Source: Oculina patagonica (taxonomy: Eukaryota). Taken from it: a stretch of 64,000 bases of DNA. Below are positions 4,667-26,900 of this stretch, piece by piece (positions within the stretch are counted from its first letter, which is position 1; the number at the start of each line of letters is the position of its first letter). Position numbers and translations under genes: made by a program. The notes beneath the pieces are model-generated. The model was not told where the DNA came from. It was given only the letters and a program-made list of their open reading frames with translations, and made no database searches. The DNA lies in contig NC_135765.1 in assembly GCF_052425735.1 (NCBI RefSeq), forward strand, positions 19,902,001 to 19,966,000, read 5' to 3'.

Positions 4667-4745
4667 TGCCTGTGGTGAATCCGTCTTGTGTTAAAAAGGA
4701 TGACAGGGCAAAGGTATCTATTAAGGACACGTACAGTGCCTTAAC

Positions 4746-5296
4746 ATGGACTCCCTCCACAGTCCAACAGATAGTCATTCTATTCATTCCTTACACGAGG
4801 GATTTGTGGAACTAGAGGAACTCGTCAGTTGTGATAACGAACTAGTTTGGAAAGAACGAGCGCGATGGATTAAACTTGAAGAAGATGTTGAAGAAAGCGC
4901 AGATCGATGGGGAAAACCACACATTCCTTGTCTGACATATCGAAGCCTAAGAGAAGTTGAAACAAATCTTCAAAATGGAGTATTCTTGTTGGATCTTCAG
5001 AGAGATAATTTGCCTTCCATTTGCGAGGCAATAATCGACGAAATCAAATTGCTGAAAAAGCTAGGAGACGAAGAATGCAATGCAGTTAAAACAGTTTTGT
5101 TAACAAGACATGAGCATCAACATCAAAATAAAGTTGGAAAGCATCGAGCAAAAAATATTGCCAGGCGTCTTTCAAGGATCATGCCTCAAGGTCAACGCCC
5201 CAGACAGCCGACAGCCACCCATGATGCTCTGTTACAAATTTTTTCTGAAGATGCACCCATCCCAAGAACCAAACACGAAGATGCAAGTGACCCCAT
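4746..5296 (+). CDS. SLC4: SLC4 exon 1 (N-terminal cytoplasmic domain)
   Basis: First in-frame ATG at 4746, with an in-frame TAA at 4722. Best donor is AT|gtatgt at 5297; the exact 3' boundary is uncertain because of the phase conflict. Confidence 0.85.
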
Positions 5297-8200
5297 GTAT
5301 GTGAAACTTAATTTTAGTCCCTTGGATGATTTCATATAGTTTTATTAAATTCCATCAATGTGCGTTTCTCGGGCAATTGCAATGCTTGTTATCACAGTGA
5401 AACTAACATTTTTTCGCGAATCATCGCTGATTTTTTTAATCAAAAAAAGTAATAATAATAATAATAAGAAGAATAAGAATGAGAATTATATTAGTTATCA
5501 ACTTTATTTATAGAGGGTGGTACGTGACAGTAAAATTGACTGAAAAACTAGTGGCCCTCGATGCAAAAATTACAATGATCAAAGTTAAAAATATCCTAAA
5601 ACTAGGAGTTGCTAATAGCAAGTAAAGTGCTGCGAAGTAAGTTATAAGAATAATAATTATTTAACAGTAGGAACGGAACGGAAGGTCATAGGAATGTTTT
5701 GGATTTTCACATCTTCAGATGTGAAAGATATGATTTTTCTCAGCAAGCGAAATACTGGTAATTAACTTTGTTTACTGATAGAACTAGTAATAACTGAATA
5801 TTTGGGGAGTGCGTTCGGCAGGGAGGGGTGATGAAGGAGGGTGGAGGGTAAGGGAGTGCAAGGAGTGGCAAGTACAATATTATGTTTTCAAATTCTCTTT
5901 ATATTTGAGGTCTGTTTGCGATGTGCAAACTAAAATCAAAAGTCCATGCAAAAAAAGTGAACAACATTGCTCCGTACTGTTGAAACCTTACAAAGGTTAC
6001 ACTCAATTATAATTATGAAATCGTTCGTTGTCCCATTTATACTTTCGGCGTTAATTACTTTTGATTACTGTATATGTTGTTATGACACCATTAATTGAAA
6101 TTGTTTACAGCCTAGCAGTATCGGTTTAATAGGCTTCTTTCGATATATTAAAATTCAGCATGGTAGCGAGGCCTAGACAAAAGAAATGAATAAACATGCT
6201 TGTAAAATTTCTTTTGTTTGTGTCCTTTAGGCCTCGCTACCAAGCTGAATTTAATATATCGAAAGAGGTCTATTAATTACTTTCTTAAATCTTTTCACGT
6301 GAGAACGAGGCCATCTGTGCCAAAATATCAGTGCTTTGAACTACAAAGTTCTCTCAAATGACTTTTTCAAAACACAACTTGAACAATACCAATGCTTCAA
6401 ACAACAAAGTTCTCTGAAATGAATTAAATTACGCTACAGTAACAAAGTCACGAGCGCGCGAACAAACACATTCGAACACGAACACGCACATTTAAACAAA
6501 GTATAAACGGAAAATCGGATTGCAAATTGAAAATTAAACGGTATGATTTAATGTACGCAACAGAAACGGGCGCGCACGCGCCGCTGAAATTTAAGTTATC
6601 AACTACCGCCGCTGATCACGCAACAGCGTGTTGTTAAAATCATCTCCAACGAAATAGTTGAATCGAGTGTGACTCGCATATAAAGCGCCCAGGCCCCACA
6701 CGGACAGTCATAAATAGTGTGCTGGCTACGCTAAGGCTTCGCAGCAATAACTGAATCAATTCTAGCGATGTTAGGTGGCTCTGAAACCGCTCCCGGGAAA
6801 TTAAGTGTTTAAAATTTTAATAAATACAGCTCATTTCGTTTTTAGAATTTAAGCTTGCCGCTTCGGAAAAATCAACGGTGACTAATAGAGACAATAGAGT
6901 GTTTATGTCTCGGACCTACAGATGTCCTTGGAAATTAAATGTTCTTAAAAGCTAGTCTCAATTTGTCTCATCAATTTGTCTCATCTTTGTCTCAATTTCA
7001 GGCCGCTGGTTAGTATCAAAGGCAAACCAGCATTGTTGCCACCTCTTGAAAGAGATGCTGACTCAAGTCAATCAGCAGCAGGATTTCAATGTGACTGTTA
7101 ACAACTATCATTCTGCAGACGACAACGTAGAACAATTAAAAGATCACAACGAGAGGTCTGATATACGAGGAAAAATTCCTGAAAATGCTCAAGCCACCAC
7201 TGTTTTAGTTGGAGCTCATAATGACTTGTCCTGTATAATCAGTGCATTTATAAGGCTTGCTAGTGGCTGTGATCTGGGTAACTTTGCTGAAGTGAGAATA
7301 CCAGTGCGATTCATGTTTGTACTGCTAGGGCCTGGAGATGACACAATGGACTATCACGAAGTTGGACGCTCAATTTCAACCTTGATGTCTGATAAAATTT
7401 TTCTGGAGTCTGCTTATCAAGCAAAGGTAAATGAACTGAAACATTCCGGTTTTTCATCTTGCCTATGCAATTCAAGGGCATAATTTCAGAAAGGTGGTGA
7501 AAGAAATGGCTACCTGATGGGGTGCTTGTCCAAATATATATATATATATTTTTTAAATATCTAATGGTATGGAAATCTGGAATCTTTTGGGGAAAATCTG
7601 GACTTAGGCGTCACACGATTTCATTTTTGTCATATGCATGTTGTCTTGATCTGATCTCTTTTGATCCTTTCACTGTTTAATGTTTTCACCCAACGGATAC
7701 CAACTCCAGTAGAACACATCGAACAATTACTATTTTCGGGGATTTTCAGGTTGCACATAACATGCTATCGAGTTTACATTAACTATCCGCACTACCCACT
7801 CCACCTTGGCAATAATTCTAATAACAGCGTGATCAGGTCTCACAGCTATTTCAAAATTTCAGTGTATTAGTTTTTAAACAAACAATTGTGTTGCAGCAAT
7901 CAAGACGTTATAACGCTGACGTTTTCAAATGTTGTGTAGATGTCCCAGTAACTGCCAAACGAAGAAAGTTAAAACGGCTAAGATCGACCAAACTGTATGA
8001 TAGTTCAATGTGTACCCAAAGAGAACACTGAACACTTATGAGCTCGATGAGGCGATAGTTTACCGACCTCTAGCCAGCGGACACTAATTTATTAATCTGC
8101 CCACGGAGAGAGCTCAATGAGTAAAATTGACGAAATCATAAGCAAAAACTTCAAAAAATAAACACTTTCACTGAATAAAAACACTATCAAATTACGGTAA

Positions 8201-11200
8201 AACAATTTAACGGCTCGCTCGCGGTTTCTATCAGCTTTTGATATTTGCTCTTCAACTATCAGCTGATAAAAACCTCAAGCTTGTCGTCTAATTGTTGATC
8301 AGACCACCACTGCTAGCCAATCAGATTGCCAGTTTATCTAATAGTGGTCACTGCAATACTTTAATTATGGGTTAGAGACTGTTGTGAGTGTTTTGTTGAT
8401 AAATACACGCACGCGCTGGCCGCACAATGAACGAGAAATTTTCAATACTGCACGAGGCGTAGCCGAGTGCAGTATTGAAAATTTTGAGTTCATTGTGAGG
8501 CCAGCAAGTGCGTGTATTTGTTAACAAAACACGAACGAACAGACTCTAACCCTTTTAATATACAATCTGAGTACACTGCATCGAACTGCAAGCGATCATC
8601 GACTTAACGAACTTCAAACAACAAACTTAATGTTTAAAAATAAGAAGTGTAGTAGTACATAATTACACGGGATTACATAAATAATATAAAAATCACAAAT
8701 TAGCCGTACAGAAATAAAACTTAAAATGGTTCATAAAATCGTTCATCAGCTGTGGTCGTTCATAAATACAGTCAGCGAGAAACTTGTTCAATGCAAGTCG
8801 ATGGCTTTCACAATCAAGCAACTACAAGCAAGTCAATCGCACACAAAAATGTATTTATTGAGCTGCAGTTTACCTTTGAACATGAAAGCGCTTCAAGTTG
8901 TTATCCTCTTCGATTTTGTTTGGTATTGGATCGTTGATAATTTGAGGAAAATACTTTTCTTCCACTTCTACAAGCTTTGAAGCTGAAGACACCTTCAATA
9001 ATGCACGATTTTCGTGCATTATTGTCAATACTGCACTGTCTGAGTTTGCTGACGACAGGTAAAGCAAAATCACGTGATCTATTTTAACCAATGGCGCGCG
9101 TGGATTTTGGACAGTGAACGAAGATTGTACATTATTATTCAACAAATGCGCGCGCTGCCCAAATATGGTCAAAATGTGATTGTTATCTGTCATCCGTACA
9201 TGACAGATATCCTGCGATATACGTAGGTTGTCAAGATTCGCCCGAAATCTTAGAAATGCTGCACAACCACAGTTTTTCCTAGCTACAAAATGTATTTTGT
9301 TGACAATTTGTTGAATAATAAAACAATTATCCTGCTCAATCTTGCGGAATATCGTCTGATTTTAGCCAACTCGGCCTACGGCCTCGTCGGCTAAGTATCA
9401 GGCGATATTCCGCGCGATTTCGCAGAATAATTGTTAATTAGAGTGTTCTGTCGAGGAACTATCGGCTAATTAATATACAATCTTCGTTCACTGTCCAAAA
9501 TCCACGCGCGCAATTGGTTAAAATAGATCACGTGATTTTGCTTTACCTGTCGTCAGCAAACTCAGACAGTGCAGTATTGACAATAATGCCGATATTTTCC
9601 GAGACAAAAACACTCTATCGTTTTTATTGTTCACCATTACGTTTTCTCCCGCGCGCCTATCCTATAAAGAGCATCTTAAATTATTTTTTTTTTCTTTTTA
9701 CTCTTTGAGGATAAAAGGCTTAATTCTGTTAACTGAAAGCCAAACTAATAGTCCAGTCATTTTACTAAAAATAATGGGTCAACCTGCAACTAATTGCAAC
9801 AGAAGAAATTCCAACGGTTTTTGACTGAGAAACTTATCGTTAATATCATATCAAAAGTCCCAGAAAATCCCGGCAGGGCAAGTCATTGAAAAATGGGTGT
9901 TTTTAGAAGCTCCGAGACACGCTTTTAGAGATGCACGGAAACGAGGCTGAATAAAGCTTTTCCAAAAAAAGCGCGTGTTTATATCTTAAAAGTCAAAAAT
10001 ACAACAAAATTTGAAATGATATCTCAATTGGAAGGTTTTCTTATTTTAGAAATCAAGTTAATTTGTGATATTTCATCAATACACAGCTTTAATTTTATGT
10101 CTATTTTAGTTGCTTGCCGCGTAAAAAAGTCGCAACCCTAGCCTGTGTATGGAACTGAATAACATTAAGTAAAGTTGGCTTTTTATCTGGAGCGATTTTT
10201 TATTTTTTTATTTTTTAATGAAACTAGTTGAAATGTTTAAACCTTTCTTCAAAAATAGTGATACAATTTAAGGAAGCTTAATTTTCGTGTAGAAAGAGAA
10301 ATAAAAGCGTGAGTTTTTAACTCGGAGGCGTGTATGAGACTCACACCCAAGGCGGGTGAGTTCGCAGGTATAGTGTGCTGTGTTTGACGCCTGCAGAAAT
10401 TTTAATCTCCATCGAACAAAATGGTTTAAGAACTTCAATGTTCTGTGCTCCGACCAGGTAAGTGTATTCTGAGTTCTCTTCAAGAGTAGTTTTTTCTTTC
10501 AAAATGGAGAAGTTTCCGTGTGACACTGAACCCTCGAGACAAGAGAGACTGTGCTAGACACATGTTCTGAAAGGGGGATTCTTGGGCTGAAGTGGAACAG
10601 GCGAGAATTTTAAATGTCTATGATTTGCCGGCCGCCGGTGCTGTTTACCATCAGCCATGCAGCGTCAACTTCTGGACCGAAAAACAAATGCCAAAAGTAT
10701 TCAGTGCGTCAGATCAGCTGGATAGTAAGAAAAGAAAAAAAGGAAGCTTTTATCAACGTGGCGAACTTTCATAATTACTGTCATGGATCTAATGGAGGAA
10801 TTTCTTGGTGACTCAGCTACTGCCGCATATAGCCACACCCATATGAAGGCAAGACTTCAGGAACACTTTGGCGATCAGATTATTATAACCGAGATCAACG
10901 AAAGCCAAATGTTGTAACATTTAGAAGTACTGCATCAGCTATTCTGCACGAATTTCACTCACAGCAAAACGAAGTTGATTTGGTTTCGGAAAAATAAAGT
11001 ATTATCAGAACTCGGCTGCCTCAAGGTTGATTAAGAATGAGATCAAACTGCTTAAAACATCTAACGAAGTCTTCCTTTCGATCGAAACAGAAGCTGAGGA
11101 AAACGTTGACTTCCTTCCAGCCACGTTAAAGACGTTTTTGGAGGGTATTCTGGTTGGTAAAGATAACGTGAAGTTAGCATCAATTGGACAGGCTATTGTT

Positions 11201-14200
11201 CAGATGGCGCGACCTAGAGTGATTCTTGCGCCTTTACAAGTTGGTTTAGCAGTGCAGCTTCATCACAACTTCGCATCGAGATTTCTAATAGACACCCTTC
11301 ATCGCCATGGCTTCTTTTCTTCGTACCAAGAGGTACAGCTGTTTAATAAAAATGCTGCATTGAACCAGGGAACTGATATGCCAGATTATGACGGAGAGTT
11401 TGCTCAGTACATAGCTGACAATGTGGACCATAATCTACGTATCCTTGACGGTAACGACACCTTTCATGGCATGGGCATGATTTGTATCATCACTCCTGGC
11501 ACTAACCGAAAAAGAAGCGTCCCGAGACGAAAGTTAAGTCCTCAAGACATCTCAGCAGCTGGAAACGTTGGCCTACGCCCGCCATCTGAGCCAAGGCAAT
11601 CACAAGTGGAAATAAAGTACAATGACGTAGTTGTTGCAAGAGAAGTAGATCCACAGCGAATTTGGACATACTTTGGAAGACGTTTCTGCTGTTTAGCACC
11701 ACACGCCCAGCATGGGCTGGAATGATGCAAGCTGTCCATCGGGGTAACCATCAGGGGAAGTCATCAATAACACTTCTATCGATGATCGACCTGAACCCAA
11801 GTGAAGTCACATGTATTTCCTCCACTCTGAAAACATTCGCGGCGCCACAACATCGCTAACCCCATTAAGATTTCGATGATAGCGACGATGACGGTGATTG
11901 ACACAAGAGCTGGAAGAAACTGTGAAATTCATTTTCATTTAACAAACGATGTTCTTTTAGAATATTTCACCATTGTGAAAGATATATTTATTTGTTGGCT
12001 CGCTTGCAAATTTTTGTGCGATCCATAAAAGGATAATAAACTATCGCAACTACCATTTTTGGTGTAGACCGATTCGCTCCACGATTGAAAATTTAAATAT
12101 TATGAGATTTATTTTGCTTATTGAATACTTTTTGATTAATTTTTCCTCCGGATAAAAGTTTTCAAGCATATTTAAAGTATATTTCATGGTTTTTGGATAA
12201 AATAAATGAAATTCTGGCCATAAACAAGCATAATAACAGAACTTCTGTTTTTGAGCCTCGTTTTCATGTTACGCAAAAGCACGACTTAGAATCCGTTAAA
12301 TTTTCGAGATGTTCCCATGCATAGATCCTTTGGGACTTTTAGTATGTTGATCTTGAGACTAATTCGAAATGATTTGCGGTTGTTGCAATTAGTTGCAGGT
12401 CCAACCACAAAATGATTGGACTATAACAAACGAAACAAAACCAGACAAGAAACTCACTAAATGCAGTGAATTTAGTGGAGTTTCTCTGTCTGTAGGCCCG
12501 CTTCTTCATCGGGCGGGCCGGCACTTGGCTGATAATGACTCTCCGCGGACAAACACTATCGCACCACGTGGTCAATTTGAACCAATAAGAATCGCAGATA
12601 ATTTAGTGGTGAACTACAATTGCTGATAGTGTACGCTAGCTCAGCCAATCAGTGTGTATTTGCATTAGTATACTAGTAGAAATCTAATTAACACAAGCTC
12701 AAATACCCCTAAGACAGCTTGCTTGAATGTTACATGTAATAGCATTCATGTGTGTCGACCTTCCGGAACTCGACCAATGAATACATCGAGGATATTACAC
12801 GTTGGCTCGAAGATATGAATTTTATGTTCTCGTGGCAAAAACGATATCTCACGAGGGAGCGTAGAGACATCGCTTTTGCCACGAGAACATTAAATTCATA
12901 TCTTCGAGCCAACGTGTAATGTTCTTTTTATTATATGGAGACCAGATGAAGTTGATGTTGCCGAATTTATTTCATTGTTTTCGAATGATCGAGCCAGTTT
13001 TACAAATCAGCGTTCGTCTTCATAGAAAATACAAAGCACCCGTGCCCGGGATATAGAAACACTAACTGAATTCCAATCGATCAAACAAAATACTTGTCAA
13101 CTAAATTACACATAAGAACTGAAAACATCACTGATTTTGACTTGAATGCGGCAAAGTGTTGACGGCCGATAGTTATCAACCGCTTTTGTTTTCTTCTTTA
13201 CAACATCTTCACTTGTGAAATTCCTTGCGAAGAATTCCCTCTAAAAGCCTTGAAATCGTCAAGGTTCCCATTATGGTGTTCTCGTTCTTAACTTTTTTGG
13301 AAAACTTATTCTTTTTCATTACTTAGTAAAACAAATTAAACCTTGTGTCGGTGCTTGCTAACAACAAACGACACGAGAATCGTGGCGTCAATGAGTTAAG
13401 CCCAGGCCAAACGAGGATGTTGATGAGGGTTCAAACTTTCACCCGTGGCATGAAACTCTCATCGACTTTGAACGTGCTCAAATTTTTCATGAGAGTCGAT
13501 GAGAGTTTGACAGACTCTCGTTCTCGTTTGGCCCGAGTTGGTGATAGTAGATGAGACTTGACGTTAACTCTCATGAGAGTTGATTCTCATCAACTCTCAT
13601 CCTCGTTTGGCCCGGGCTTTAGGCAATGAGCGATATGCCACTCGCAAGAGTGTCCTTCGTACGGAACATACACCACTCGGGTCCCGGGTGGAGTGGCGTA
13701 TGGAATCTACGAGTGGTTTAGTTCCCAGTAAGACATTCTCCTCCATATAATAATGAGAGTTTTGTTCATGTTCGTTTCAGAGTCGACAGGATTTATTGGA
13801 ATCCCTTGCCAGCTTTATGGGTGACAGTCTTATTATCCCTCCAGGAGAATGGGACCGAAATCTGCTCAATCAAACAGTGCCAATCTTAGCCAATCAGGCC
13901 AAAGAGCTAGCTTTTAGGAGACGACGAGGTGGAATTAGAAGTAAAGATGTAGAAAAAGAAACATTCCGTGAGGCGATTCAAGAAAACGATATGTTTGATG
14001 ATCCCCTTTCAAGGACGGGCAAGTTTTGCGGTGGGCTTGTACGTGATGTCAGGAGGCGGTTCCCCTTCTACCTCAGCGATTTTAAAGATGCCTTAGATGT
14101 TCATTGTTTGCCAACAATAATCTTTGTGTACTTTGCTTGCCTTGCTCCAGCCATCACTTTCGGAGGTTTGCTGAGTGAAAAAACCAACGCCTGGATGGGA

Positions 14201-15646
14201 GTTTCAGAAATGATATTGGCAACAGCATTATCTGGAGTTCTGTTTTCGCTGTTTGCAGGGCAGCCACTCATCATAATTGGGGCTACGGGTCCACTTCTTG
14301 TGTTTGAAAAGAGTACATTTCAACTAAGCGAGAGTTTTGAAATTGAGTTCCTTCCTTGGCGAGCGTGGGTCGGAATATGGGTGATGGTTATATGCTTTAT
14401 TATTGTTGCACTTGAGGGATGCTTTCTGATCAATTACTTTACACGTTTTACAGAAGAAATATTTGCCTTAATGATATCCATTATTTTTCTATACGACGCG
14501 TTTTACTACGTGGGACACGTTTTTCAAGCGTACCCCTTAAACGCCGGTGTCACAACTAGTTTGTTGGTTCCTTCGAACTCGACTGATAACGAGGCGGTAA
14601 ATTACATCAAAAATCACACAACAGCTAACACAGCCCTGTTTTCCACAGTCTTGATGCTAGGAACGTTTTCTGTTGCCTATTTTTTGAGAAAGTTGCGTCA
14701 CAGTCATTTTTTTGGGCCGAGGACTCGACGTACTGTCAGTGATTTTGGAGTTTTTATTGCCATTGTTGCTATGGTGACGGTTGATTGGCTGACAGCGGGT
14801 GTGTACACGCAGAAGTTGTCGGTTCCTGATGGGCTTTCCGTTACTTCACCCAACAGACACAGCTGGCTTATTAACCCAATGGGAGTTGCACAAACCATGT
14901 CTGCCGGTGCTATCTTTGCAGCTCTTGTTCCAGCAATTCTTGTAAGCATCTTGATCTTCATGGAGATCGAGTTTACTGGCATTATTCTGGACAAAAAAGA
15001 CCATAAATTGAAGAAAGGCATGGGCTACAACTTGGATCTCTTTGTTCTAGGACTGTTGGTTGGACTGTGCTCTATTCTGGGTCTGCCCTGGATGTGCGCC
15101 ACTCCTGTTCACACGCTGTCTCATTTCCACGCCTTAACAGTGATTAGTACAAACCACGCTCCCGGGGATCATCCTCATCTGATAGAAGTAAAAGAACAAC
15201 GTCTCACAAACATTGTGATCCACCTTCTGATTGGCTTCACGGTTCTTCTTTCACCAGTAATGCGTCTTATACCCATCGCGGTTCTCTTTGGAGTATTTAT
15301 CTTCCTTGGAGTGTCCTCTTTATCACATATTCAGCTGGTTGAACGAGTAAAGCTTCTTTTCATTCCATCTGCTCACCATCCAGATGAAAAATTTGTCACG
15401 AACGTTAAAACGAGCAAGATGCACATGTTTACTATTGTTCAAGTGTGTTGTGTATGTGCGCTGGTTGCCATGAAGCTCACTGCTGTCGCACCAGCTTTCC
15501 CATTCTTTATAATCTGCATGATTCCACTTCGAAAGCTTTTAGAGCGGTTTTTCTCAACCGAAGAACTGGAGGCCTTAGACACTGAAGTAGAAGATGTATA
15601 TGACAGTGATCTGGATGAATATGATTCAATTCATATCCCTATCTAA
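4746..15646 (+). CDS. SLC4: SLC4 (Band 3/anion exchanger family) bicarbonate transporter, 3 exons: 4746-~5296, 7002-7426, 13781-15646; probable scleractinian SLC4-gamma type
   Basis: Cytoplasmic-domain motifs FVELEEL, WKERARWIKLEEDVEE..RWGKPH (exon 1) and GKIP..A.ATTVLVG, PVRFMFVLLGP, YHEVGRSISTLMSD (exon 2). Membrane-domain motifs FACLAPAITFGGLL, GQPLIIIGATGP, RFTEEIF, EQRLT, VLFGVFIFLG (exon 3). The exon2/3 junction AAG|gtaaat...tttcag|AGT is in frame (AYQAK|SRQDLL). The gamma assignment is inference. Confidence 0.93.
6126..6276. mobile_element. Palindromic MITE in SLC4 intron 1
   Basis: ~50-bp arms (TTAATAGG..TCTTTCGATATATTAAA..TCAGC..GGTAGCGAGGCCTA) in inverted orientation. Confidence 0.75.
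7002..7426 (+). CDS. SLC4: SLC4 exon 2 (cytoplasmic domain, second half)
   Basis: Acceptor tttcag at 7000-7001 and donor AAG|gtaaat at 7427. ORF 7046-7483 carries Band-3 motifs. Confidence 0.85.
8369..8552. repeat. Long imperfect palindrome centred on CGAGGCGTAGCCGAG (Crypton-like element end)
   Basis: ~85-bp arms read directly. Related palindromes at 9322-9435, 12794-12920, 26019-26165, 27421-27517, 47569-47698 and 60592-60697. Confidence 0.75.
9016..9589. repeat. ~115-bp near-identical inverted repeat pair (9016-9130 / 9476-9589)
   Basis: The opposite-strand ORFs 8870-9193 and 9514-9708 share VKIDHVILLYLSSANSDSAVLTIM. Confidence 0.85.
10560..11850 (+). mobile_element. Decayed large DNA-transposon ORF (Academ-like transposase relic) in SLC4 intron 2
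   Basis: Frameshifted fragments DLPAAGAVYHQPC, PLQVGLAVQLHH.FASRFLIDTLH..GF.SSY.EV, ADNVDHN.RILDG.DTFHGMGMI, PAWAGMMQ, MIDLNPS. Superfamily assigned from motif recall. Confidence 0.65.
13399..13618. mobile_element. PIF/Harbinger-type MITE
   Basis: TIR AGCCC(A/G)GGCCAAACGAGGATG; TTA TSD at 13396-98 and 13619-21. Confidence 0.8.
13781..15646 (+). CDS. SLC4: SLC4 exon 3 (entire transmembrane HCO3- cotransporter domain and C-tail)
   Basis: Acceptor ttcgtttcag at 13780, then an uninterrupted 621-codon frame with many hydrophobic segments, ending DEYDSIHIPI*. Confidence 0.95.
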   Translation, partial: SRQDLLESLASFMGDSLIIPPGEWDRNLLNQTVPILANQAKELAFRRRRGGIRSKDVEKETFREAIQENDMFDDPLSRTGKFCGGLVRDVRRRFPFYLSDFKDALDVHCLPTIIFVYFACLAPAITFGGLLSEKTNAWMGVSEMILATALSGVLFSLFAGQPLIIIGATGPLLVFEKSTFQLSESFEIEFLPWRAWVGIWVMVICFIIVALEGCFLINYFTRFTEEIFALMISIIFLYDAFYYVGHVFQAYPLNAGVTTSLLVPSNSTDNEAVNYIKNHTTANTALFSTVLMLGTFSVAYFLRKLRHSHFFGPRTRRTVSDFGVFIAIVAMVTVDWLTAGVYTQKLSVPDGLSVTSPNRHSWLINPMGVAQTMSAGAIFAALVPAILVSILIFMEIEFTGIILDKKDHKLKKGMGYNLDLFVLGLLVGLCSILGLPWMCATPVHTLSHFHALTVISTNHAPGDHPHLIEVKEQRLTNIVIHLLIGFTVLLSPVMRLIPIAVLFGVFIFLGVSSLSHIQLVERVKLLFIPSAHHPDEKFVTNVKTSKMHMFTIVQVCCVCALVAMKLTAVAPAFPFFIICMIPLRKLLERFFSTEELEALDTEVEDVYDSDLDEYDSIHIPI

Positions 15647-16184
15647 ACTACAGGAATATTTAGGCATCTTTCGACCAATAACTTTAACTTACAGAATAGG
15701 AGTCATAATAGATAAAACCGAACGATTATATATTTTATATAGACAGGAAGACAAAACATTGTTGGTGAAGACGAAATGCCCTTCTTAAGCTTACCTTGTT
15801 ATTGTCCAGTTGTGTTGCCTTTTGTAGACACGTTTCCTAGGGTCCTCCCTTTATACGTGTACAAAAATCTTAATACGTGTACATTAAATGGAGAAAGTTC
15901 AGCCATATCTTTTACGTGTACGTACGAATCGTAGTTACACTATTGCAGCAACACCATTTTCATTAACTTTAACATTTATTTTTTCGTTGTGCTGACTTGA
16001 AAAACGAAACGATAAAAAGGCACCGCCGTGTACAAACAAACCACCCCGTCCGCGTAACATAATTCCCATTGAACTTAAATGTTCTAGTTAGTTCAGTATA
16101 TTGAGGAGGCCCTGTTAGGGGTTTTTGGGGTAAGGGACAACGGGAAAAATAGTTTAAGGATAAGGGATAACAGGATTAGTTTAA

Positions 16185-16980
16185 GGGCCCACTGACGGAT
16201 TTCTCGCGCGTTGCTAAGGTGCTAAAAGAGCGCGCGCTGTATTGCGTGTACGGGTTACTCACGCTATCTGTACGCGCCAGATTTGCAAAAAAATTTCCTT
16301 TCGAGCACTTCTTCAAACTCGCCAAATAAGATGAAACAATAAGAACTACCGAAAAACTTCCTGACTAATAGTTGACTTCACATCTGAGAATCAGTCAGAT
16401 TAAATTGAACCAGAAAAAGCAGTTTTTTTACACATGCAAATAATCTCAAAAGCGTACGCGTACAACTAGCGCGCGTCAGCGCGCGCACTGTTCTCTTGTC
16501 AGATGAATTACGCATGCGTTAACAAAATGATTTCCGGTTTGCAGAAAATATCTAAATACTTGGCGGTCTTTAATTTGATTCACTTTTTTTCGACGTTATA
16601 TTTTTCCGACCTGGGTCGGGAACATAACTAAGTATTCATTTGCTTAAATCATTTTTAATAAAAATTTTATGGACAAATCAATATTTTAAATCTCTCTAAA
16701 AAAATTATTTTCCATAATGAAATGAAACCCATACTTACCAAGATACAAAAACAAATAAAGATCATGACACCATGAATAATTTTCTGATAACATGCAAAAC
16801 ATCAAAAAGTTTAGACTTTTTCTTTATTGGTCACGTGATCATGGGCGTGGCCCGATGACGTCATATTTACGTTATGGACTGAGTAAAAGATTCAACAATA
16901 ACTAAACAAGAAAAATTGCTAAAACTATATAACCGTGAATGTCCCTAGCAACGAGTCCAAATATATACGTCAGTGGGCCC
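16185..16980. mobile_element. Non-autonomous TTAA-TSD element (Kolobok-like)
   Basis: TTAA|GGGCCCACTGACG...CGTCAGTGGGCCC|TTAA. Confidence 0.8.
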
Positions 16981-17452
16981 TTAAGGAATAATAGAAAACA
17001 AGCCCTGTGACGTCCAGGCTCTGTTTTTATCACACTCAACTTGTCTTTTTTACACTTTTGCTTAATTTTTTTTACACCCTTGATCAGTTATCGGTCGTAA
17101 CGAGTTATTTCAAGCAACACTTTGAACTCAAGAGCACCGCTTTTGTCCTAGATGGCCTGGGGTGAGAGACCAAATTGATTTACTTGATTTCGAGCTGCCT
17201 CGTACAGAAGTGGTCCCCTTCTTTCTTTGTTTACCATCGTTCGACCACCCCCCCCCCCAAAAAAAGCTCGTTTGGTCTCGCCATGGGTATTTTGGCTCGA
17301 CTACGTCTCGCCAAAATACGAGCCATGGCTCGACCAAACTCGCCTGATATGCCGCCGAAGCGTTCCAAAAAGGTACGATTAGGTATAAATATCATCCTTT
17401 TTTCCTCTGAAATCCAAACATTCATATATTTCCAAAACGCGTGAGGCTGGTA

Positions 17453-17730
17453 TCAGCTGGACTGAGGCAAAGAAACTCTGGACATTTTCCCAAAAGTGTT
17501 TTGTTGTCGAACATTCCCAAAAAAGATGGATAAGTGTTTCCTACTCTGTTTTGCACAGATAACAGTTTCTGAAATAACAATTTTAGGTAAAAAGGAGTTC
17601 GTTGCTTTACGTCTGCGGAGGAATTTGAACTGAAAGTTTCTTAATTTAGTACTAAGTGTGCACAATCTTGGTAGTAAATAAATCGCAGTCCAGCTCAAAT
17701 CCTCCACAACATCAAGTTTGCAATCCCTTA
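17453..17730 (-). mobile_element. L1/Tx1-like LINE fragment (zinc-finger zf-RVT region)
   Basis: STKLRNFQFKFL...ATNSFL.KI, then frameshifted HLFWEC-like sequence; similar to the C-terminus of ORF 44047-45756. Confidence 0.65.
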
Positions 17731-18238
17731 CCCATTTTTCTCGACTTTTTTGAGGGCGAGTAGATTTTTTGTTTATTATAATTATGAGCGGAGCTCCCAC
17801 GGCGCCGCGAGCGGAGCATCCATAGGCAGGCAAATGGTATCCTATCGAACCGAGAAATTTTGGTTGTCACACGAACTAGGCCTGGGGTCGAGGTTGCCCG
17901 CCCGTGGCTAAAGAAAAGTAAGGAAATTACAAACAGCAAATAAAGCTCGCAAGGCAAGACAAAATGTACACAAGGGGTAAAATTACACAGCAAAATATCT
18001 GAGAGGTTTATTATCCTGAGAGGTTAAATATCTGAGAGGTTTATTATCCAACTGCTCTATTTTGTTAGTCTGTATTCATGTGTGAGTGTATCGAAGCCTT
18101 TACACCAAAAAATTGGCTGTCGTTCGATCGCTACACGGTTATATTATTCAATTTATCGGTCTCAGGTCGCATTTTTCGTAACCGTAAAACGCGCAATTGA
18201 CGTTATGTTCTATCGACTGGATGATGTGGACGTTTCAG

Positions 18239-18670
18239 TAAGGATGGGCCGATACTCGATACCAAATATTCGATACACCGATATTTTGACAATTTTGAAA
18301 AGTATCGATACTTTCGAAAAATATCGCACTTTCGATACGTTTTCGATACTGCACACGTGACCTGAGCCTGCGGTCTTCTGGTCAGCACGTGAGGTTTGAA
18401 AATGCGATTTTGCTCAAAGAAATATTGATGTTCTTGTCAATATTTGAATTTTTCTTGCCTTGACTTGATGTCCACACATTGCTGATGCAACAGTGAACCG
18501 AAAAGACCAAAATCAACATTCTTGGCTAACATTTATAACGCCAGGTCTGTCCTTTGTATGGTCACGTGACAAACCAATGACGTCAGGACGGAAATTACGT
18601 CATAATATCGATATCGAGAAAAAAGGCAAATATCGTATCGTTTTGAAAAACCTGTATCGACCCATCCTTA
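18239..18670. mobile_element. hAT-type MITE
   Basis: TIR TAAGGATGGG.CGATAC; 8-bp TSD CGTTTCAG at 18231-38 and 18671-78; internal ATCGATA repeats. Confidence 0.88.
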
Positions 18671-18861
18671 CGTTTCAGTTTGATCTAAACGATTTTATGT
18701 TATGAAAACGCGGGAAAATTTGTTGCGCGGTGTTCACTGTGTAGGCTGAATGAAACCGCAAGCATTTCTTACTGAAATATTTCTCGCACGATGTCCTCAA
18801 ATGTCATATTTATCCCGTGAAATTGTGGAAAACGAAAAAGGTTTACGAGGAGACCCAAAAT

Positions 18862-19530
18862 AATTCAGCTCATAATTTGACCTGGGCTCACCAAATGTGG
18901 GCCTGTAACAAAATCGCGCCAAAGCATTCATAAATGCCTGCAAGCGTTTCTCCCTCAGGAGGTGAACAATTTGCACCCGTTTTCAAGTCGTTTGCCCACA
19001 AAAAAAATTCAGCTCATAATTTAACCTGGGCTCACCAAATGTGGGCCTGTAACAAAATCGCGCCAAAGCATTCATTAATGCCTGCAAACGTTTCTCCCCC
19101 AGGAGGAAAATAGTTTTCACCCGTTTTCAAGTCGTTTCGTCAGGAAAAAAAAATTCAGCTCATAACTTGACCTGGGCTCACCAATTGTCGGCCTGTAACA
19201 AAATCGCGCTAAAGCGTTTATAAATAGCTGCAAACGTTTCTCCCCCAGGAGGAATACAGTTTGCAGCCGTCTTAAAGTCGTTTGCTCACGAAAAAAAATT
19301 CAGCTCATAACTTGACCTGGGCTCACCTTATGTCGGCCTGTAGCAAAATCGCGTCAAAGCGTTCATAAATGCCTGCAAACGTTTCTCCCTCAGGAGGTGA
19401 ACAATTTGCACCCGTTTTAAAGTCGTTTGCTCACGAAAAAAAAATTAATCTGATAACTTGACCTGCGATCATTGCCTGTAGCAAAATCGCGCCAGAACGT
19501 TCAGAAAGGCCTGTAAGCGTTTCTCCTCCA
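18862..19530. repeat. Tandem array, 144-146-bp unit, ~4.6 copies
   Basis: Units start at about 18862, 19006, 19152, 19297 and 19443 (AATTCAGCTCATAA.TTGACCTGGGCTCACC...). Confidence 0.9.
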
Positions 19531-19546
19531 GGAAGAAACCAGCGAC

Positions 19547-22500
19547 TCAAAAGAGTCGACTTGTGGACTCCGGTTTGCCATGCCTTCGGACCATCCTGGA
19601 AAATGCGTTCAGGAAACTTGCTGTATCCAACGAAAAGACTACCTCCAAATGAACTGCTCTTGAACTCGCACAAGTAAAGAGACACAAATAACGCTTCGCA
19701 GACACTTTTCTTGTCAGCTTGACAACGAATGGACCAGCAAAATCGACTCCGCAATGGGCGAAACATCGCACTGATGTTCCCAGCCTGACATCTGGTAGGA
19801 GTGCCATGATTTGTTCACCTCTGCGTTTTCTTTGAAGCTTACAGAAGTTGCACTCTCGTTCCCATCGCTTGATTTCTTCTCTGCCATTGACAATGCAGAA
19901 TTTTTGTCGTAGCTCAGCAAGAGTATATGTGCAACGACGAACTTCGAAATGTTATGTTTCTTCGGTAATATAACCGGGTGCTTAGCATCATAAGGTAAAC
20001 TGGACAACTCTAGTCTACCACCCACACGCAAGATTCCATCACTGTCCAAAAACGGTGACAATCTCCAAAGTTGGCTACTTTTAGAGACAGTTCCTCCTCC
20101 TTTCAAATCATCAGCTCTTCCGAAAAGTTCCTATTTGAGCTTTGCGAACCCAGTACTTCTCTGCATTCTCGATTTCCTCTGGTTCTAGGGTTTCTTTCAG
20201 GTAAGCGTTTGGCCCGATATTTTTCACCTGGTTATCACTTGACATATTTCTCTGCTCTTTCTGTAGTCCTGCTGTCTTACACTTGGATATAAATCGCAGG
20301 ACATACGCGGTGATTCTTAATTATCTGAGCCAGGACAAAAACCTCTCGGCATCAAGCAATGGAAGCGATTTCTTGCTTTAAAACGTGAGATTGATTTTCA
20401 ACAATTCTTGTTTGCCTTCTTTAGTGCAATCAGTCTGACCAGGTCGGCTTTCCGAGGGCCAGGATTCCTCCCCCTCGTGTAAGAAGGCAGGTCCCTGAAA
20501 CCAGCGGCTCTCAGCTGACAAATCTGTAAGGTCAAGACCCCTCGTTGTGTCATCAGCAGGGTTTTCTTCACTTGGCACGTGCCGCCATTGTGTTGGGCGT
20601 GATTTTCGCTGAATTTCTGCTACTCGATTAGCAACAAACGATTTCAGTCGTCTTGAATGACCTCTGATCCAGTAGATCACATCCATGCTGTCAGTCCACA
20701 TGGTGTGTTCACTTAGCGGTATTTCTAGTTTCTCAGAGACCGTTTGAGCTAGTCGCACTCCAAGCACCGCCGCCATTAATTTAAGGCGCGGGACGCTCAC
20801 AGCTTTGATCGGTGCTACTCTTGCTTTGGCTGTTACTAGGGCGGCGGAAATGTGACCACTCACAAGTGTGTATCTGGCGTAGCTGACTGCAGCATAAGAT
20901 AGTCTGGAAGCGTCGACGAACGTATGAAGCGATACTCATTCTACTTCCTCGTCGTGTCGAAAGCAACGTAGTATTTTCACCTTTGGAGCTTCGGGTAGAG
21001 TGGACTGCTGAGTGGACGCTTTCAAGTCGTCAGGAAACTCTTCATCCCAGTCAAGGCCTCCTAACCAAGATTCTTGCAGTGCCATCTTCGCTCTGATAGT
21101 GTATGGGGCTAGGAACTGGAGCGGATCAAACAGTGTGGCAATACGACTCAACAGTCCTCGTTTCATTCCATTTAACGCCTAATGTTTTGACACTCGGCAG
21201 CTCTGATTCGTCGAACTTCACCCCAGTTGCTCGATCGTTCTCTGGAATCCCTTCTAGCACTTTCATTCGATTACTACACCACTTTTGTGCATGGAAACTG
21301 GCGTCACTCAGGAGTTTAGTTAAGTCCTCACGCACGAGAATAGCATCTGTTTCTGAATCCATAATGTCATCCATGTACATATCTTGAATCATAACCTGAG
21401 CTGCTGTTGGGTACTTGTCTACAAAGTCTTGGGCGTGACTGCGAACTACGAACTGAGCAAGGTAAGGGGATGCTCTGTCTTCAAACACTAGGCGAACTGC
21501 TTCATAAACATCAACAGGCTTTGACACATCCAGGTACCTCCATAACAGTCTGTGATATCTGCGGTCTTTTTCAGCGAGTTTTTTTTTCAGCAACAGGTTT
21601 CTGTCGAAAACAAAGTAGAATCTCCAGAACATCTCTCTGAAGCTTTGGTCCCGTAAGCATCGCGTCATTCAACGACGCTCCTTTGCATTTCGCAGCCGAG
21701 TCAAATACACCCTGCGAGCAGATCCCCTTCTTTTTCCACTGATATATGAGAAGAAGGGGCTCTGAAGTTGTGTATTTTTTTTTTGGGGGGGTTTTTTTTC
21801 GGGGGGGCTTTTCCCCCCGGGGGCTTTTTTTTTTTTTCTACCGTTTTTTTAAAAAAAACACCCCACAAAAAGAAGCCAACCCCCAACCCCCCCGGAAACT
21901 TTCTACTTTCCAAATCTCAACCGTAGGGAAGTTAAAAGAGGCTCTGCTCGCAGGGTGAGTCAAATACTATGCGTACTTTTGTGGTCTCTCTATACTCTCG
22001 GATGACTGGGAAGTGAGGAAGATACCAGCTTGGACCGTCATTCACAACTTCAGTCTCTACCTTTCGGATATAGTCCTTGTCAATGTTCGCGTTCATTGCT
22101 TCCTTGTAACGTTGTGCAAACTCCGGCTTTTTGAGTAGGCTCTTTTCAAGCGAGTACAGACGTTTTTCTGCCTCTTCTCTGTTATCAGGTACAGAGGGTA
22201 ATTCTTCCTTCCACGGAATTGCGACCTTTCGTCTTGACTTAATTGGTTAACATCTAAATTTCGAACTCCGAGAGAGTCAATCTCCCACATTTCTCGCAAT
22301 TGTTCATCAAGGCGTGTCTCACTTAAGGTCTGCGTTCGGAAGGTTCTGGCAAAAGTATTTCTCTTAGCTGAAGGCAGGGCGGGAAAACGTCCAAACACGA
22401 GTCCACCCCGAGGGCGTTTTCCTTGCCACCGGTGCTCCAATTGGCCCATAGCACTCTGACAAGGCTAAGGACAATTCGGGATGGTCTGACCCAATAAGAA

Positions 22501-22570
22501 TGCCAATCGTTTTCCTGCCAGGGATTTTATCGACAAATGCTAGAGCCTTTTGATGCGGGTGGAAGGACCA
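19547..22570 (-). mobile_element. Degenerate BEL/Pao LTR-retrotransposon pol (RT-RNase H-integrase)
   Basis: Frameshifted ORFs with YMDD (RT), KARVAP..SVPRL.L and WTDS (Pao RNase H), LSPFLD.DG.LRVGGRL, GVDFAGPF, LFTC...RAVHLE (integrase). No LTRs identified. Confidence 0.9.
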
Positions 22571-23777
22571 AAAAATTTGTGTTACAATGACAACGACTCC
22601 GATTGACTAATTCGAAATGAAACGACTCAATAACTTCTATTCGAACGACCTTTTCGTATCCACCAGCGATAAACGAATGCAAAAGACTCTAAAACTAAAG
22701 TCAAAGTTCCGTAGGATAAAAAAATAATTATTCCCTATGAGGTGCGGCTTAAACAAACATTCACCGCAACACATTCTTTATTCACAAGGCTTGATAAATT
22801 TTTATTTCACTTGAAGAAGGGGGCCATTATATGACCGTGATTATCTATCAAATCCCACCAGCCCCCCCCTCCCCTCCATAAAAAATGAACCCTCCCTTAT
22901 ACATAGCAAAGGTGACACTAGTGGGTTAACAAAAGTGCGTAAACTTTCATCAACTCTTGTACACAAGAGAAAAACAAAACGTAAAAAAATAACAGTGAAA
23001 CCCAGAGAATTCTGAATGAAGTGATCCCAGTAACCTACTACATGTAGTACTTCAAAAATATGATGTCTGCACAAACGGAAAATGCCGTCCCAAGGAAAAA
23101 ACAAAACAAGGCCATAACAACAATAATAAAGAGTAAGAACGACACTTAAATTATGACTAACATGGATACTTTATTTCTCATTTACAATGAAAAAGAAAGG
23201 AAAAGAAACATAGACATGAAATGAAACGGTTTTTTAAGCTGATCTGTGCCTTTAATTCTTATATTGTTCCAAATATAAAATTGGCCACCGTGTGTCTAGA
23301 TAACAGTATTTGAATTTGACAACTGTAGCTGTTCCAATTACGCAAAAAAGCAATCAGAAATAAGAATTTTGTTTCGCAAACAACTTGGGCTGAAACGCGA
23401 GAAAAGCCATAAAGATTATTAAGGCTACGCCGGCAGATCCGTCCGAGTTTTTTTTGTTTACTTCTCAGTTATGACAAAATAGTTTTAAAATTAATTGTAA
23501 CACCACTTTTTTGAAAACAGCATCTACACAACAGCTTATATGCGCACTTTTTCCCCCACAGATACAGTTGGTTTTTTTTACATTTTACATACCTCTACTT
23601 AAATGGCTAAAGGATCCCTTAGCATAGTTTGGATTAGAACACTGCAAAAATACATTCTTTCAAGTGATATATATATATATGTCCTAAAGACGACACTTGT
23701 ATGCAGACAAGTAATCCTTTTTTTTTTGCATAGAGTACGTATGTTTGTCTTGGCCTTATTGCTCTGATAATGCAACA

Positions 23778-23924
23778 TCAGGCCTCAGATGCTATTAGCT
23801 GTGGATTGATTGCAACACTCTTTGTACAGTTATCAGTCTTAAAAATACCAATTAGTCGATCAGCCAACTCAAACATATTATTCCGTAAGCTGATGATAAT
23901 AAACTGAGCATTCTTTGTCCTCTC
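23778..23924 (-). CDS. SMC4: SMC4 last exon ([14 protein letters not shown]...IASEA*)
   Basis: ttttag acceptor; TGA at 23778-23780. Confidence 0.95.
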   Translation of the reverse strand, partial: ERTKNAQFIIISLRNNMFELADRLIGIFKTDNCTKSVAINPQLIASEA

Positions 23925-26900
23925 CTAAAAGAAATAAAAGAGATTAAGTAGCAATGTCAAAAAAAAAAAAAAAAAAAAAGTTAGTCAATGTTACTTTTTA
24001 TGTAAAAAACCCTCTAAAGTTGTATCTTTGGTAAAATTAAACCAATGACCCAGTGCATTTTATTTTGTATTGTCTTTGCATGCTTCTTTACAATGAAAAA
24101 GCCTAAAATAACTACAAACTAAAACAGATCAGTTTCTGGACTACAAACATTGTGGAAGTCATGGATTTATAACCCTATATTTCTTAATATTTGGCACATT
24201 GCACATTAGCTAGCAATCATCTCTATCACTATACCATTTCAAACTATGCACAACTGCCATGTTGAACTTGATTTAGTGCAGGTGAACCTAGTCCTAGAGG
24301 CAGCATTATAATATGAACACCTCCTTAGCAAGGTCCTGTCCCTATACATTTTCCTAAACAATAAAACCCCTATGGGCAGTTGTGCAACACTGACAACGTA
24401 TGGACACCGTCAATATTCAATGACCTCTAAAACCAAACAAAACTCTGGAAATACATAATCCATTGCTCAAATTGTTAATAATGAGATACAGGTATGCATT
24501 TGTCAATACTGACATGGTCAAAACCATAAAACTTGAAATTATTTGAAAAACCTTAACTACAATGTAGAACTTTTCATTGTCTGTACTAGGGATTAACAAC
24601 TCGTACCCTTATAAAGTATACTGACCTTGATATAGTTTGCCACAATAGACACATTCCTAAAGTCAAGAGCAGCATCAATTTCATCCATCACATACAGAGG
24701 TGTTGGTTTGTAGTGATGAAGAGCAAATACCTACATAACAATTGAGAAAGAAATGGCATTAACAATTCTGTAGTACACCCAAAACAATTATTTTGTGATT
24801 GGTCGAAAGAACCATGAATTAACCAAAATTGCCCTCTGTACCCATGCATCTTTCAAATGGAAATGTGCACAATTAAATAACTTATCTTATTTTGACTATT
24901 GATTAATTGATTTCGATGGATCGGTCATGCCAGTTATTTCAGCATCTGTAGTAATTGTTTGAAGATGACTGGGAAACAAACTTAAGATTTGCAGCTGTTA
25001 TTTGGGACATCACACAATACCTCTTCGCACAAAAACCCACTTTAACATAAACTGGATATAGTACACCTGTCACAATATCGATCAGGTTTTTAAAAATTTA
25101 AACTCTTTTCAATTTTATTCTTGTGGGTGCCAAATTTAAATTAAAAATCACAAATTGACTCAAATACAAGCTACACAGAGAACAAAACAAGGATGAGACA
25201 ATTGTGTGAGTTTACTTACAAATCATAACAAACAACCGCACTCATCCTTAAAATGCAATAGATTGCTCCTGCATTATGCTTGGATACCCACAAACAATGT
25301 TTTCAAGTTGAGGCTCAGGTGGACAAAATACAAAATATAAAACTGTCCACACAAGCCTTGCCTAGAAACTATTGTTTGCAGGTATCCAAGCGAAATGCTG
25401 GTAAGGTCTATTATTATACATTAGAATTCTTTTGAAACATGTGATTGGTTGAGAGCATTCAGCCAATATACAGTAGCATGTGAACTCAACATGATAACCC
25501 AGTATCTGCTGAGAAACCACGAGAGGGGAGGACGAAAAAGAGACGACGGGCCCAGAGACAAGACCACAGAGAGAGAAACCAAGGAGGCCAGAAAGCAAAA
25601 GAAAGCAGATGGAGGAGGGACAGCGCCACCAGCCAACCGCCCAACAGAGCGCGCGACACAGGGGACGGAGCCCAGAACGCCAGCCAGCACGAAGAAAGAC
25701 CAGTCCCGGTGAAATGGCTAATGGGTTATCATGTTGAGTTCAAAGTCCACCTAGTTTCCAAGTCCCTCGTCCGTGTAGTGCTGTCAAACTTTTGAAAATA
25801 TGGCTGAGCGATTCGCCTCCGTTTCCGAAAAGGAATTGAAAGTTTTGATCGAGAATAAAGATTCTAAAAACACCAAGTGTAAAAATTCTGAATGATTATT
25901 TGAGGGAGAAGAACCTGGAGGAACCTCAAGATAAAACCGCTTTGGCCAATGTTCAGACTAAGTTTTAAGCCGGCGCTAGAAAAAAACTGATGGCAAATTG
26001 TTTGAAAACGTATAATAAAACAATTACTGAATTCGGTTTTCGCATATTGTGAATATCAAAACCTCGTGTCTGTGTTATCTGCCTCAGTCTTCGGCTTCGG
26101 CAGATAACATAGACCTCAGTTTTGATAATTCATGATATCATGCTCAACCTCATCCAATAATTGCTTATTATCTGCTAGTGAATTGATTGTCCTCTCACCA
26201 AAGCCAGTGAACTTAGAGTCTTCTCTCCTCCTGATAAGTTAGAGATGTTTTTCCAGCTTTTCTTTGGTGGCCTCACACTAAAATTCAAAACAGAACATGT
26301 ATTCCAAATAGAATTTGTCCAGAGTTGTCTTGAAAGCAAAATTTGAAGTCTGTAAAATATGTTTAGATTTCTTTATCAGACTAGACATACTAGTTCCTTT
26401 GAAATAACTTATGGCAACCACAAGTGGCAAGGTGAAACTCATTTAACTACATTTTCTTTAAAGTACCAGTAATATATATATATTTCTTTAGAGTAATATA
26501 AAACCCTTGAATTAAAGGGGCTGGTTATTTACTTGTTTAAATGCTGGATATTGGCTGCGGTCACATCTACGACGTAACTAAAGTTTAACTATAGTTAGTC
26601 TCAAGTTACGTGACGTCATACCTAACTATTATAGTTAGTGCTTTCGGTCGTCTTAGCGGTCACACCAATGCAGTTAACTATAATTAGTTCTGATTAGCTT
26701 TTGAATAATTCTGAATTTAAATTAGTTCGTGACAGCCCTTGTTGTTGATCTTTGTCTAGTTGTTCCTCTATTTTTTCTATTTTTATAGTTTGGGTGAACA
26801 GAGAAGCGGTCACATTGCTGAAATAGCTAACTATAGTTAACGATGTCTTAACTATAGTTAGTAGTCTAGATGTGACCGCAGCCATTGTGTGTCTCACAGT

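Follow-up and report, generated by a model that had tools for sequence, protein, structure and literature searches.

A three-exon SLC4 gene of the stony coral Oculina patagonica is very likely SLC4-alpha and not the calcification paralog SLC4-gamma

A gene for a bicarbonate transporter of the SLC4 family, divided into three coding exons, lies in a 64,000-nt stretch of the Oculina patagonica genome (contig NC_135765.1; the window) and raises the questions of which SLC4 paralog it represents and how it came to have so few introns. The initial annotation took it for SLC4-gamma, the paralog restricted to stony corals that is implicated in supplying bicarbonate to the skeleton, and derived it from an intron-rich anion exchanger (AE)-type paralog via an mRNA intermediate or massive intron loss. 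The evidence presented here indicates that the gene is very likely the ortholog of coral SLC4-alpha in the AE branch of the family, and that it probably went through an ancient loss of introns, with later introns in its 5' half.

The gene has the domain order of the SLC4 family, a Band 3 cytoplasmic domain followed by an HCO3_cotransp membrane domain. In Pfam, Band_3_cyto (PF07565) was matched by positions 4746-5294 (E = 2.8e-37) and 7004-7426 (E = 3.3e-33), and HCO3_cotransp (PF00955) by positions 13781-15643 (E = 3.6e-197). The joint 5296|7002, with GT..AG borders, is present in spliced contigs of two public RNA runs (X1, 2530 nt; X2, 2405 nt), and past position 7426 these contigs run on with letters matching 13781 onward, which gives the joint 7426|13781. 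Exon 2 is present only once in the genome; hence the spliced contigs derive from RNA, and the gene is transcribed and spliced in O. patagonica. The three-exon structure proposed earlier from the sequence, with its exon of 1866 bp, agrees exactly with these joints, which give coding exons of 551, 425 and 1866 bp, and the joints together with the PF00955 match confirm that the whole membrane domain is encoded by the last exon. The features are listed in Table 1. Repeats in intron 1 match many unrelated contigs, with a high multi-contig depth at ~5550-6750, and intron 2 includes a 232-aa open reading frame at 11027-11725 that has no Pfam hit.

Table 1. Features of the SLC4 gene in the window (positions are those of the window)
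Feature	Position	Strand	Remarks
5' untranslated leader	4675..4745	+	as far as RNA contigs reach; contig X1 starts at 4675
14-codon upstream open reading frame	4700-4744	+	inside the 5' leader, read from the sequence
Coding exon 1, 551 nt	4746..5296	+	begins at the start codon and encodes the first half of the Band 3 cytoplasmic domain; exon end in phase 2
Intron 1, 1705 nt, phase 2	5297..7001	+	in variable linker; GT..AG joint in RNA contigs X1 and X2
Coding exon 2, 425 nt as assembled, 424 nt in transcripts	7002..7426	+	second half of the cytoplasmic domain
TTT run, TT in contigs X1, X2 and X5	7084..7086	+	shifts the spliced frame of the assembly
Intron 2, 6354 nt, phase 0	7427..13780	+	between ...AYQAK and SRQDLL...
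Coding exon 3, 1866 nt	13781..15646	+	end of the cytoplasmic domain, whole membrane domain and C-terminal tail; stop codon TAA 15644-15646
Glu codon at the human AE1 E681 position (TM8)	14963..14965	+	from alignment
His codon at the AE1 R730 / AE3 R1052 position	15110..15112	+	from alignment

In the assembly the spliced reading frame is broken, because the lengths of exons 1 and 2 (551 + 425 nt) do not sum to a multiple of 3. One T of the run at 7084-7086 is missing in all three contigs that cover position 7084; thus, an extra T in the assembly, absent from transcripts of this species, breaks the frame of exon 2. As assembled, the frame stops at a TAA at 7099-7101 (codon 217), and the version with TT is open for 946 codons, so that the frame of ~945 codons reported previously holds for the transcripts and not for the assembled letters. 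When the assembled letters were searched by eye for donor and acceptor sites of intron 1 that keep the frame, no pair fitted, because of the extra T; the junction observed in RNA is itself canonical. The one-base frameshift probably explains the absence of a full-length protein model for this gene and merits flagging to annotators.

Whether the extra T is a slip of the assembly or a null allele that the sequenced colony really carries, i.e. a pseudogenised haplotype, bears on the same run, and the null allele is a serious possibility that falls somewhat short of an even chance. Exon 2 of the window and the X1 and X2 transcripts disagree at five other sites, so that the assembled copy is a distinct haplotype. 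Full-length annotated proteins of the Oculina genome were found for beta and gamma and none was found for alpha, and one dead allele might be tolerated if the gene is silent in adults, as it is in Stylophora. However, the three contigs with TT come from two labelled organisms, SLC4-alpha is under strong long-term constraint (dN/dS = 0.07 in exon 3 in comparison with Stylophora alpha), and exon 3 is open in both assembled haplotypes. The haplotig C1290 (12,265 bases, ~99% identical) ends within intron 2 and so does not include exon 2. One base too many or too few in a homopolymer is the commonest assembly error.

Among named proteins, the closest is Stylophora pistillata "solute carrier family 4 member alpha" (AJQ31788.1), with 84% identity. 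In the phylogenetic tree, which was built without the epsilon-type paralog on contig C14 (too divergent to tile with tblastn), starred branches join the window protein with Stylophora alpha, a Montipora sequence and Nematostella XP_032226913, apart from beta, gamma and delta. The Nematostella protein is thus an alpha ortholog from outside the stony corals, and its gene has the same intron sites. SLC4-alpha has also been reported in the corallimorph Rhodactis (Lin et al. 2017, PMC5604590). The exon numbers published for SLC4-alpha, beta and gamma are 3, 12 and 14, respectively, and beta and gamma share a scaffold (Zoccola et al. 2015, Sci Rep 5:9983, PMC4650655), and the three coding exons found here, one of them carrying the membrane domain, match the alpha entry in Table 1 of that study. 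The three-exon layout of SLC4-alpha is therefore already known since 2015, and the gene itself is an ordinary and largely known one. What is added here is that its introns appear not to be inherited from the family ancestor, that it is transcribed in this species, and that its anion site is changed clade-wide.

The identification as SLC4-gamma, for which the sole support is that the gene is an AE-branch SLC4 gene in a stony coral, can be given almost no credence. SLC4-gamma does share family, branch and domain order with the window gene, but it is restricted to stony corals, whereas alpha occurs in anemones too, and the window protein falls inside the anemone-containing alpha clade and not in the sister clade of coral beta, which contains corals only. 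A clade of the window protein with gamma was rejected by the AU test (p = 3.2e-53). In the literature, SLC4-gamma has 14 exons and is always linked to beta (PMC4650655, PMC10268325), whereas the window gene has three and is not linked to beta; gamma further retains the anion-site Arg, which is His in alpha. The gamma candidate was thus refuted by tree, linkage and exon count, and the SLC4-alpha gene is not the calcification paralog.

The actual SLC4-gamma of the Oculina genome (P0129) adjoins beta (P0130) in a tandem on contig C11 at 22.67-22.725 Mb; SLC4-alpha is on contig C8. The beta gene has 15 coding exons, and gamma, which encodes 1015 aa, has 14 mapped exons and an ATG-bearing exon, making 15 coding exons as well; the beta and gamma labels of the two Oculina genes are based on tree shape, tandem linkage, protein length and exon number. 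The membrane domain is split into at least 6 pieces in the paralog on C12 and at least 9 in that on C14. The contrast between the intron poverty of this gene and its paralogs is thus borne out. Formation of the skeleton depends on gamma, as its knock-out by CRISPR has shown (Tinoco et al. 2023, PNAS 120:e2216144120). The correction matters, as the mislabel is a tempting one: with the window locus taken as "the calcification transporter", the wrong gene would be studied.

Several features are common to Oculina and Stylophora SLC4-alpha. Their identity over the membrane exon is 84% without gaps, the last exon has 1866 nt in both, both genes have three coding exons with the two introns at identical sites and in identical phases, and both have an upstream ATG at -46 and His at the position of AE1 R730. 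They differ in the length of the introns (1705 and 6354 nt in Oculina, 684 and 305 nt in Stylophora), of exon 1 (longer by 57 nt in Oculina) and of exon 2 (longer by 9-10 nt), and in the 1-nt frameshift of the Oculina assembly. Moreover, RNA of Oculina alpha is present in two public runs, whereas Stylophora alpha was undetected in adult tissue (PMC4650655).

The layout of three blocks with a single membrane-domain exon extends across the alpha clade, from robust and complex stony corals to Nematostella and deeper lineages. The coding exons measure 494/415/1866 nt in Stylophora and 506/361/1571/256 nt in Nematostella, and the same layout was found at the loci L048, L050, L052 and L053. The phase of intron 1 is the same in Stylophora and Nematostella, and the site of intron 2 is the same in these two and at L048 and L050; thus, the introns of alpha occupy alpha-specific sites, and this conservation extends from Oculina to Nematostella and to deeper lineages. 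When intron positions were mapped on the alignment, alpha had none of the 11 positions common to beta and gamma. Two of the 11, LMSD[Q/E]| and K|[A/V]R, occur also in the NBC-type (delta) paralog on C12 and are therefore ancestral. Intron 2 of alpha lies 10 codons from an ancestral site, in a stretch that is gap-free in the alignment, and the novelty of intron 1, which lies in an unalignable linker, would be indicated by its phase only.

These positions suggest that an intron-rich AE-type ancestor would have lost all of its introns, most simply when a processed mRNA was retroposed to an unlinked site, and that the 5' half would then have acquired new introns before the diversification of the hexacorals. 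The origin proposed in the initial annotation, retrogene-like and from an intron-rich AE-type gene, hence stands for alpha, which shares none of the 11 introns, and falls for gamma; of the two fates that it allowed for the introns, retention or later gain, the alpha-specific sites favour the latter. As in a retrogene, the site is away from the putative parental locus (C8 as against C11). The coding sequence is interrupted by two introns (three in Nematostella), all of them alpha-specific, which is compatible with later gain. Because the event would predate the coral-anemone split, marks of retroposition are expected to have been erased, and a poly(A) remnant or a target-site duplication is not expected to survive for more than 500 My. 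No published retrogene claim for a cnidarian SLC4 gene was found in a literature search; the non-ancestral introns of alpha give the retroposition idea a testable basis.

Intron-regaining retrogenes are known from other animals, and SLC4-alpha resembles amphioxus SYCP1 (PMC5803294) in the loss of all parental intron positions, the position unlinked to its paralogs and the location of the new introns in the 5' part. It would differ from retrogenes of the SYCP1 type in being far older, in having no surviving insertion hallmarks, and in that the beta-type parent was retained and not replaced; its mRNA intermediate is a putative one.

The same pattern could also be produced by reverse-transcriptase-mediated or stepwise loss of introns in place. 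In that case the layout would have arisen without a retroposed copy, by recombination with partial cDNA or by successive single losses, and the two 5' introns would be old, having slid or having been lost in the other paralogs; such a history is regarded as unlikely. The 5' half holds both of the introns that survive, which fits cDNA-mediated loss with its bias towards the 3' end, but beta/gamma introns within the region of alpha exon 1 (before FVELE and in LEKG) have been lost too, so that loss was not confined to the 3' side. Intron 2 has the phase of the ancestral intron 30 nt upstream, yet a slide of 30 nt within a gap-free conserved stretch corresponds to no known mode of intron movement. 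The phase of intron 1 differs from those of the nearest beta/gamma introns, and the alpha gene shows no linkage to either of these paralogs.

The neighbourhood of the gene bears on this question for the more recent past. COG8/Dor1 adjoins alpha downstream, on the opposite strand, in Stylophora, in Nematostella and at L050, which shows that the locus has been stable since the hexacoral ancestor and is silent on earlier times. In Oculina, COG8/Dor1 is on the contig of alpha in the same orientation as in these relatives, but 745 kb away, and no neighbours common to the Stylophora or Nematostella loci and the window were found by tblastx within its 64 kb. An SMC-hinge gene occupies about 51195-55032 of the window on the minus strand.

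SLC4-alpha was matched over its full length by the structures of human AE3, AE2 and AE1, and its membrane domain is 46% identical to that of human AE3 (8y85; E = 1.5e-179). Like human AE1-3 (SLC4A1-3; structures 4yzf, 8gv8 and 8y85), to which it is ~46% identical throughout the membrane domain, it has a glutamate in TM8 at the position of AE1 E681 and an acidic tail with an LDEYD motif. The TM8 sequence is FMEIEF in alpha, whereas the Na+-coupled paralog on C12 has FMDQQI, with Asp at that position. Because alpha keeps the AE-type glutamate, we infer that it would be a Na+-independent carrier of anions or bicarbonate.

The second residue characteristic of AE1-3, the anion-site Arg (AE1 R730), is replaced. 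Of the 18 alpha-clade sequences aligned, 17 have His at this position and one (P0095) has Leu. In Oculina alpha the His is residue 769, and Pro stands two residues ahead of it. Among the aligned AE-type sequences outside the clade (20 in number, comprising coral beta and gamma, Dendronephthya, and medusozoan and bilaterian AEs), 19 have Arg and Hydra P0155 has Met. As judged from this substitution, the substrate range or the pH dependence of alpha probably differs from that of classical Cl-/HCO3- exchangers. Combined with the intron data, it leads to a tentative proposal, made with less than even confidence, that alpha is a retrogene of a beta-type exchanger which arose before corals and anemones split and acquired introns later, and that the titratable His may turn it into a carrier that is gated by pH or has another selectivity. 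If so, alpha would be no ordinary Cl-/HCO3- exchanger and might serve in early stages of life. Alpha further differs from human AE1-3 in its shorter N-terminal domain and in its 3 exons, as compared with about 20 in human AE genes.

The gene lies on the forward strand as three open blocks, which were located by ORF listing and Pfam, and no further SLC4 pieces were found in the 64-kb window. One contig in each of two public sequencing runs, X1 and X2, joins 4675-5296 to 7002-7426 across a GT..AG intron, and past 7426 the letters of these contigs are identical to 13781 onward. Exon 2 is present in a single copy in the genome; hence, RNA, not a processed copy in the DNA, is the source of the spliced contigs. 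They reproduce exactly the exon model of the initial annotation, with coding exons of 551, 425 and 1866 nt and the entire membrane domain inside one exon. The transcribed leader carries a 14-codon upstream ORF (4700-4744) that ends 1 nt 5' of the start codon; an upstream ATG is present in Stylophora alpha too, at -46, but there it overlaps the start. The introns measure 1705 and 6354 nt, as compared with 684 and 305 nt in Stylophora. Intron 1 includes repeats (5550-6750) matched by many unrelated, deeply covered contigs, and intron 2 a 232-aa ORF (11027-11725) with no Pfam match, possibly a transposon remnant.

Coordinates of the SLC4 blocks and of related features
Feature	Position	Strand	Remarks
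Band_3_cyto	4746-5294	+	Pfam
Band_3_cyto	7004-7426	+	Pfam
HCO3_cotransp	13781-15643	+	Pfam, E 3.6e-197
SMC hinge domain exons	51195-55032	-	
Beta/gamma tandem pair	G000:C11:22669819-22724911	both forward	P0130 then P0129, ~19 kb between coding regions

Among named proteins, exon 3 is closest to Stylophora pistillata AJQ31788.1 (84% identity, gap-free), which was submitted under the name "solute carrier family 4 member alpha"; Nematostella XP_032226913 (60%) comes next. Four other SLC4 loci were found in the genome: two in tandem on contig C11 and single loci on C12 and C14. The C11 pair matches at about 100% the O. patagonica proteins P0130 (beta-type, 1201 aa, 15 coding exons) and P0129 (gamma-type, 1015 aa, 14 exons plus one ATG-bearing exon). 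A maximum-likelihood tree was built from 43 sequences and rooted on the C12 paralog, which is NBC-type. In it, a clade with starred support joins the window gene to Nematostella XP_032226913, Stylophora alpha, Montipora and two unnamed lineages. P0129 belonged to a clade made up of corals alone, whose sister group was the P0130-type clade of corals; Nematostella "band 3" branched outside the two. This arrangement of beta and gamma is the one already published (PMC4650655, PMC5604590, PMC10268325). Constraining the window gene into the gamma clade cost 576 log-likelihood units (AU p = 3.2e-53). The SLC4-gamma identity initially assigned is ruled out by this cost and by the placement in a clade that also holds an anemone protein. 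The gene is the already described SLC4-alpha. Zoccola et al. (2015, Table 1; PMC4650655) list 3 exons for SpiSLC4-alpha, 12 for beta and 14 for gamma, and place the latter two on a single scaffold; Acropora gamma has 14 exons, and linkage of gamma to beta holds in nearly all corals (Tinoco et al. 2023, PMC10268325). Stylophora SLC26-gamma, with 3 exons versus 17-18 in its paralogs (PMC4650655, Table 1), is a possible second example in corals of a bicarbonate-transporter paralog poor in introns.

The three-block layout is shared widely. Coding exons are 494, 415 and 1866 nt in Stylophora alpha and 506, 361, 1571 and 256 nt in Nematostella alpha, and these three blocks recur in four database contigs (L048, L050, L052 and L053), whose identity with the window is 72% to 46%. 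Intron 2 lies at one codon boundary, between ...AY.A. and ..DLL..., in the window, Stylophora, Nematostella, L048 and L050, and intron 1 is in phase 2 in the first three. A third intron in Nematostella alpha (L032:14645-23156), 8.5 kb long and in phase 2, lies close to the membrane domain's 3' end; it is absent from corals, and within it a 163-aa gene is called on the other strand. Metagenome contigs from ENA, JGI and Tara (L048, L049, L051-L054) form two deeper alpha-like clades with three-block layout, 53-55% and 44-48% identical. The Dendronephthya (octocoral) gene, weakly placed beside the alpha clade, is multi-exon and retains the AE arginine.

Within the region alignable with alpha, beta and gamma have 11 intron positions in common, and alpha has none of them. 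Two of the 11, after LMSD[Q/E] and between K and [A/V]R in the membrane domain, also occur in the NBC-type C12 paralog and are therefore older than the AE/NBC split. Alpha intron 2 lies 10 codons downstream of the LMSD[Q/E] position, within a gap-free conserved stretch, and the phase of alpha intron 1 is unlike that of the nearest beta/gamma introns. Alpha and beta/gamma are on separate contigs. It is reasonable to regard this pattern as that expected from retroposition followed by intron gain: the processed mRNA of an AE-type gene rich in introns would have been copied to a new site, and the retroposed alpha would have gained its introns later. The retrogene-like origin first proposed for gamma is reasonable, but it applies to alpha. 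Loss of the same introns in place, with no retroposed copy, is a less likely alternative. Insertion hallmarks are not to be expected at the age of alpha, and a literature search found no published statement of a retrogene origin for this gene.

The membrane domain aligned end to end with the human AE3, AE2 and AE1 structures. The TM8 glutamate (AE1 E681; 14963-14965) is retained, versus Asp in the Na+-coupled paralog. The anion-site arginine (AE1 R730, AE3 R1052) is replaced by His (15110-15112), as in 17 of 18 aligned alpha-clade sequences, the other having Leu. Arg occupies this position in 19 of 20 aligned AE-type sequences from outside the clade, which include coral beta and gamma, Dendronephthya, and AEs of medusozoans and bilaterians; the exception is Hydra, with Met. 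The deeper alpha-like clades have His at this site, with Leu in one sequence. Alpha is predicted from these residues to carry anions independently of Na+, with a changed selectivity or pH dependence, and the present evidence does not link it to calcification. Stylophora alpha was not detected in adult tissue or ESTs (PMC4650655), whereas spliced Oculina alpha RNA occurs in two runs.

The unbroken frame initially assumed was not borne out. Exons 1 and 2 (551+425 nt) together are not divisible by three, and the window reads TTT at 7084-7086, giving a stop at codon 217 (TAA, 7099-7101) in the spliced frame as assembled. Every contig covering 7084 (X1, X2 and X5, the last unspliced and from a second labelled organism) has one T fewer, and with TT the spliced frame runs to 946 codons. 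The sole other assembled haplotype, C1290 (~99% identical), ends within intron 2 and so is uninformative on this point. The extra T may be an assembly slip or a real null allele. A dN/dS of 0.07 for exon 3 against Stylophora, at near-saturated dS, points to strong long-term constraint. C1290 is an unplaced contig of 12,265 bases that corresponds, in reverse orientation, to 12549-25499; it has no counterpart to most of 16186-19551, and through it exon 3 is present twice in the assembly.

In Stylophora, Nematostella and L050, the gene 3' of alpha is COG8/Dor1, encoded on the other strand; in this genome it is on the same contig as alpha, 745 kb downstream. The hinge exons are consistent with the neighbouring SMC gene noted initially. 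A run of 153 N at 1548-1700 marks an assembly gap or masked stretch.
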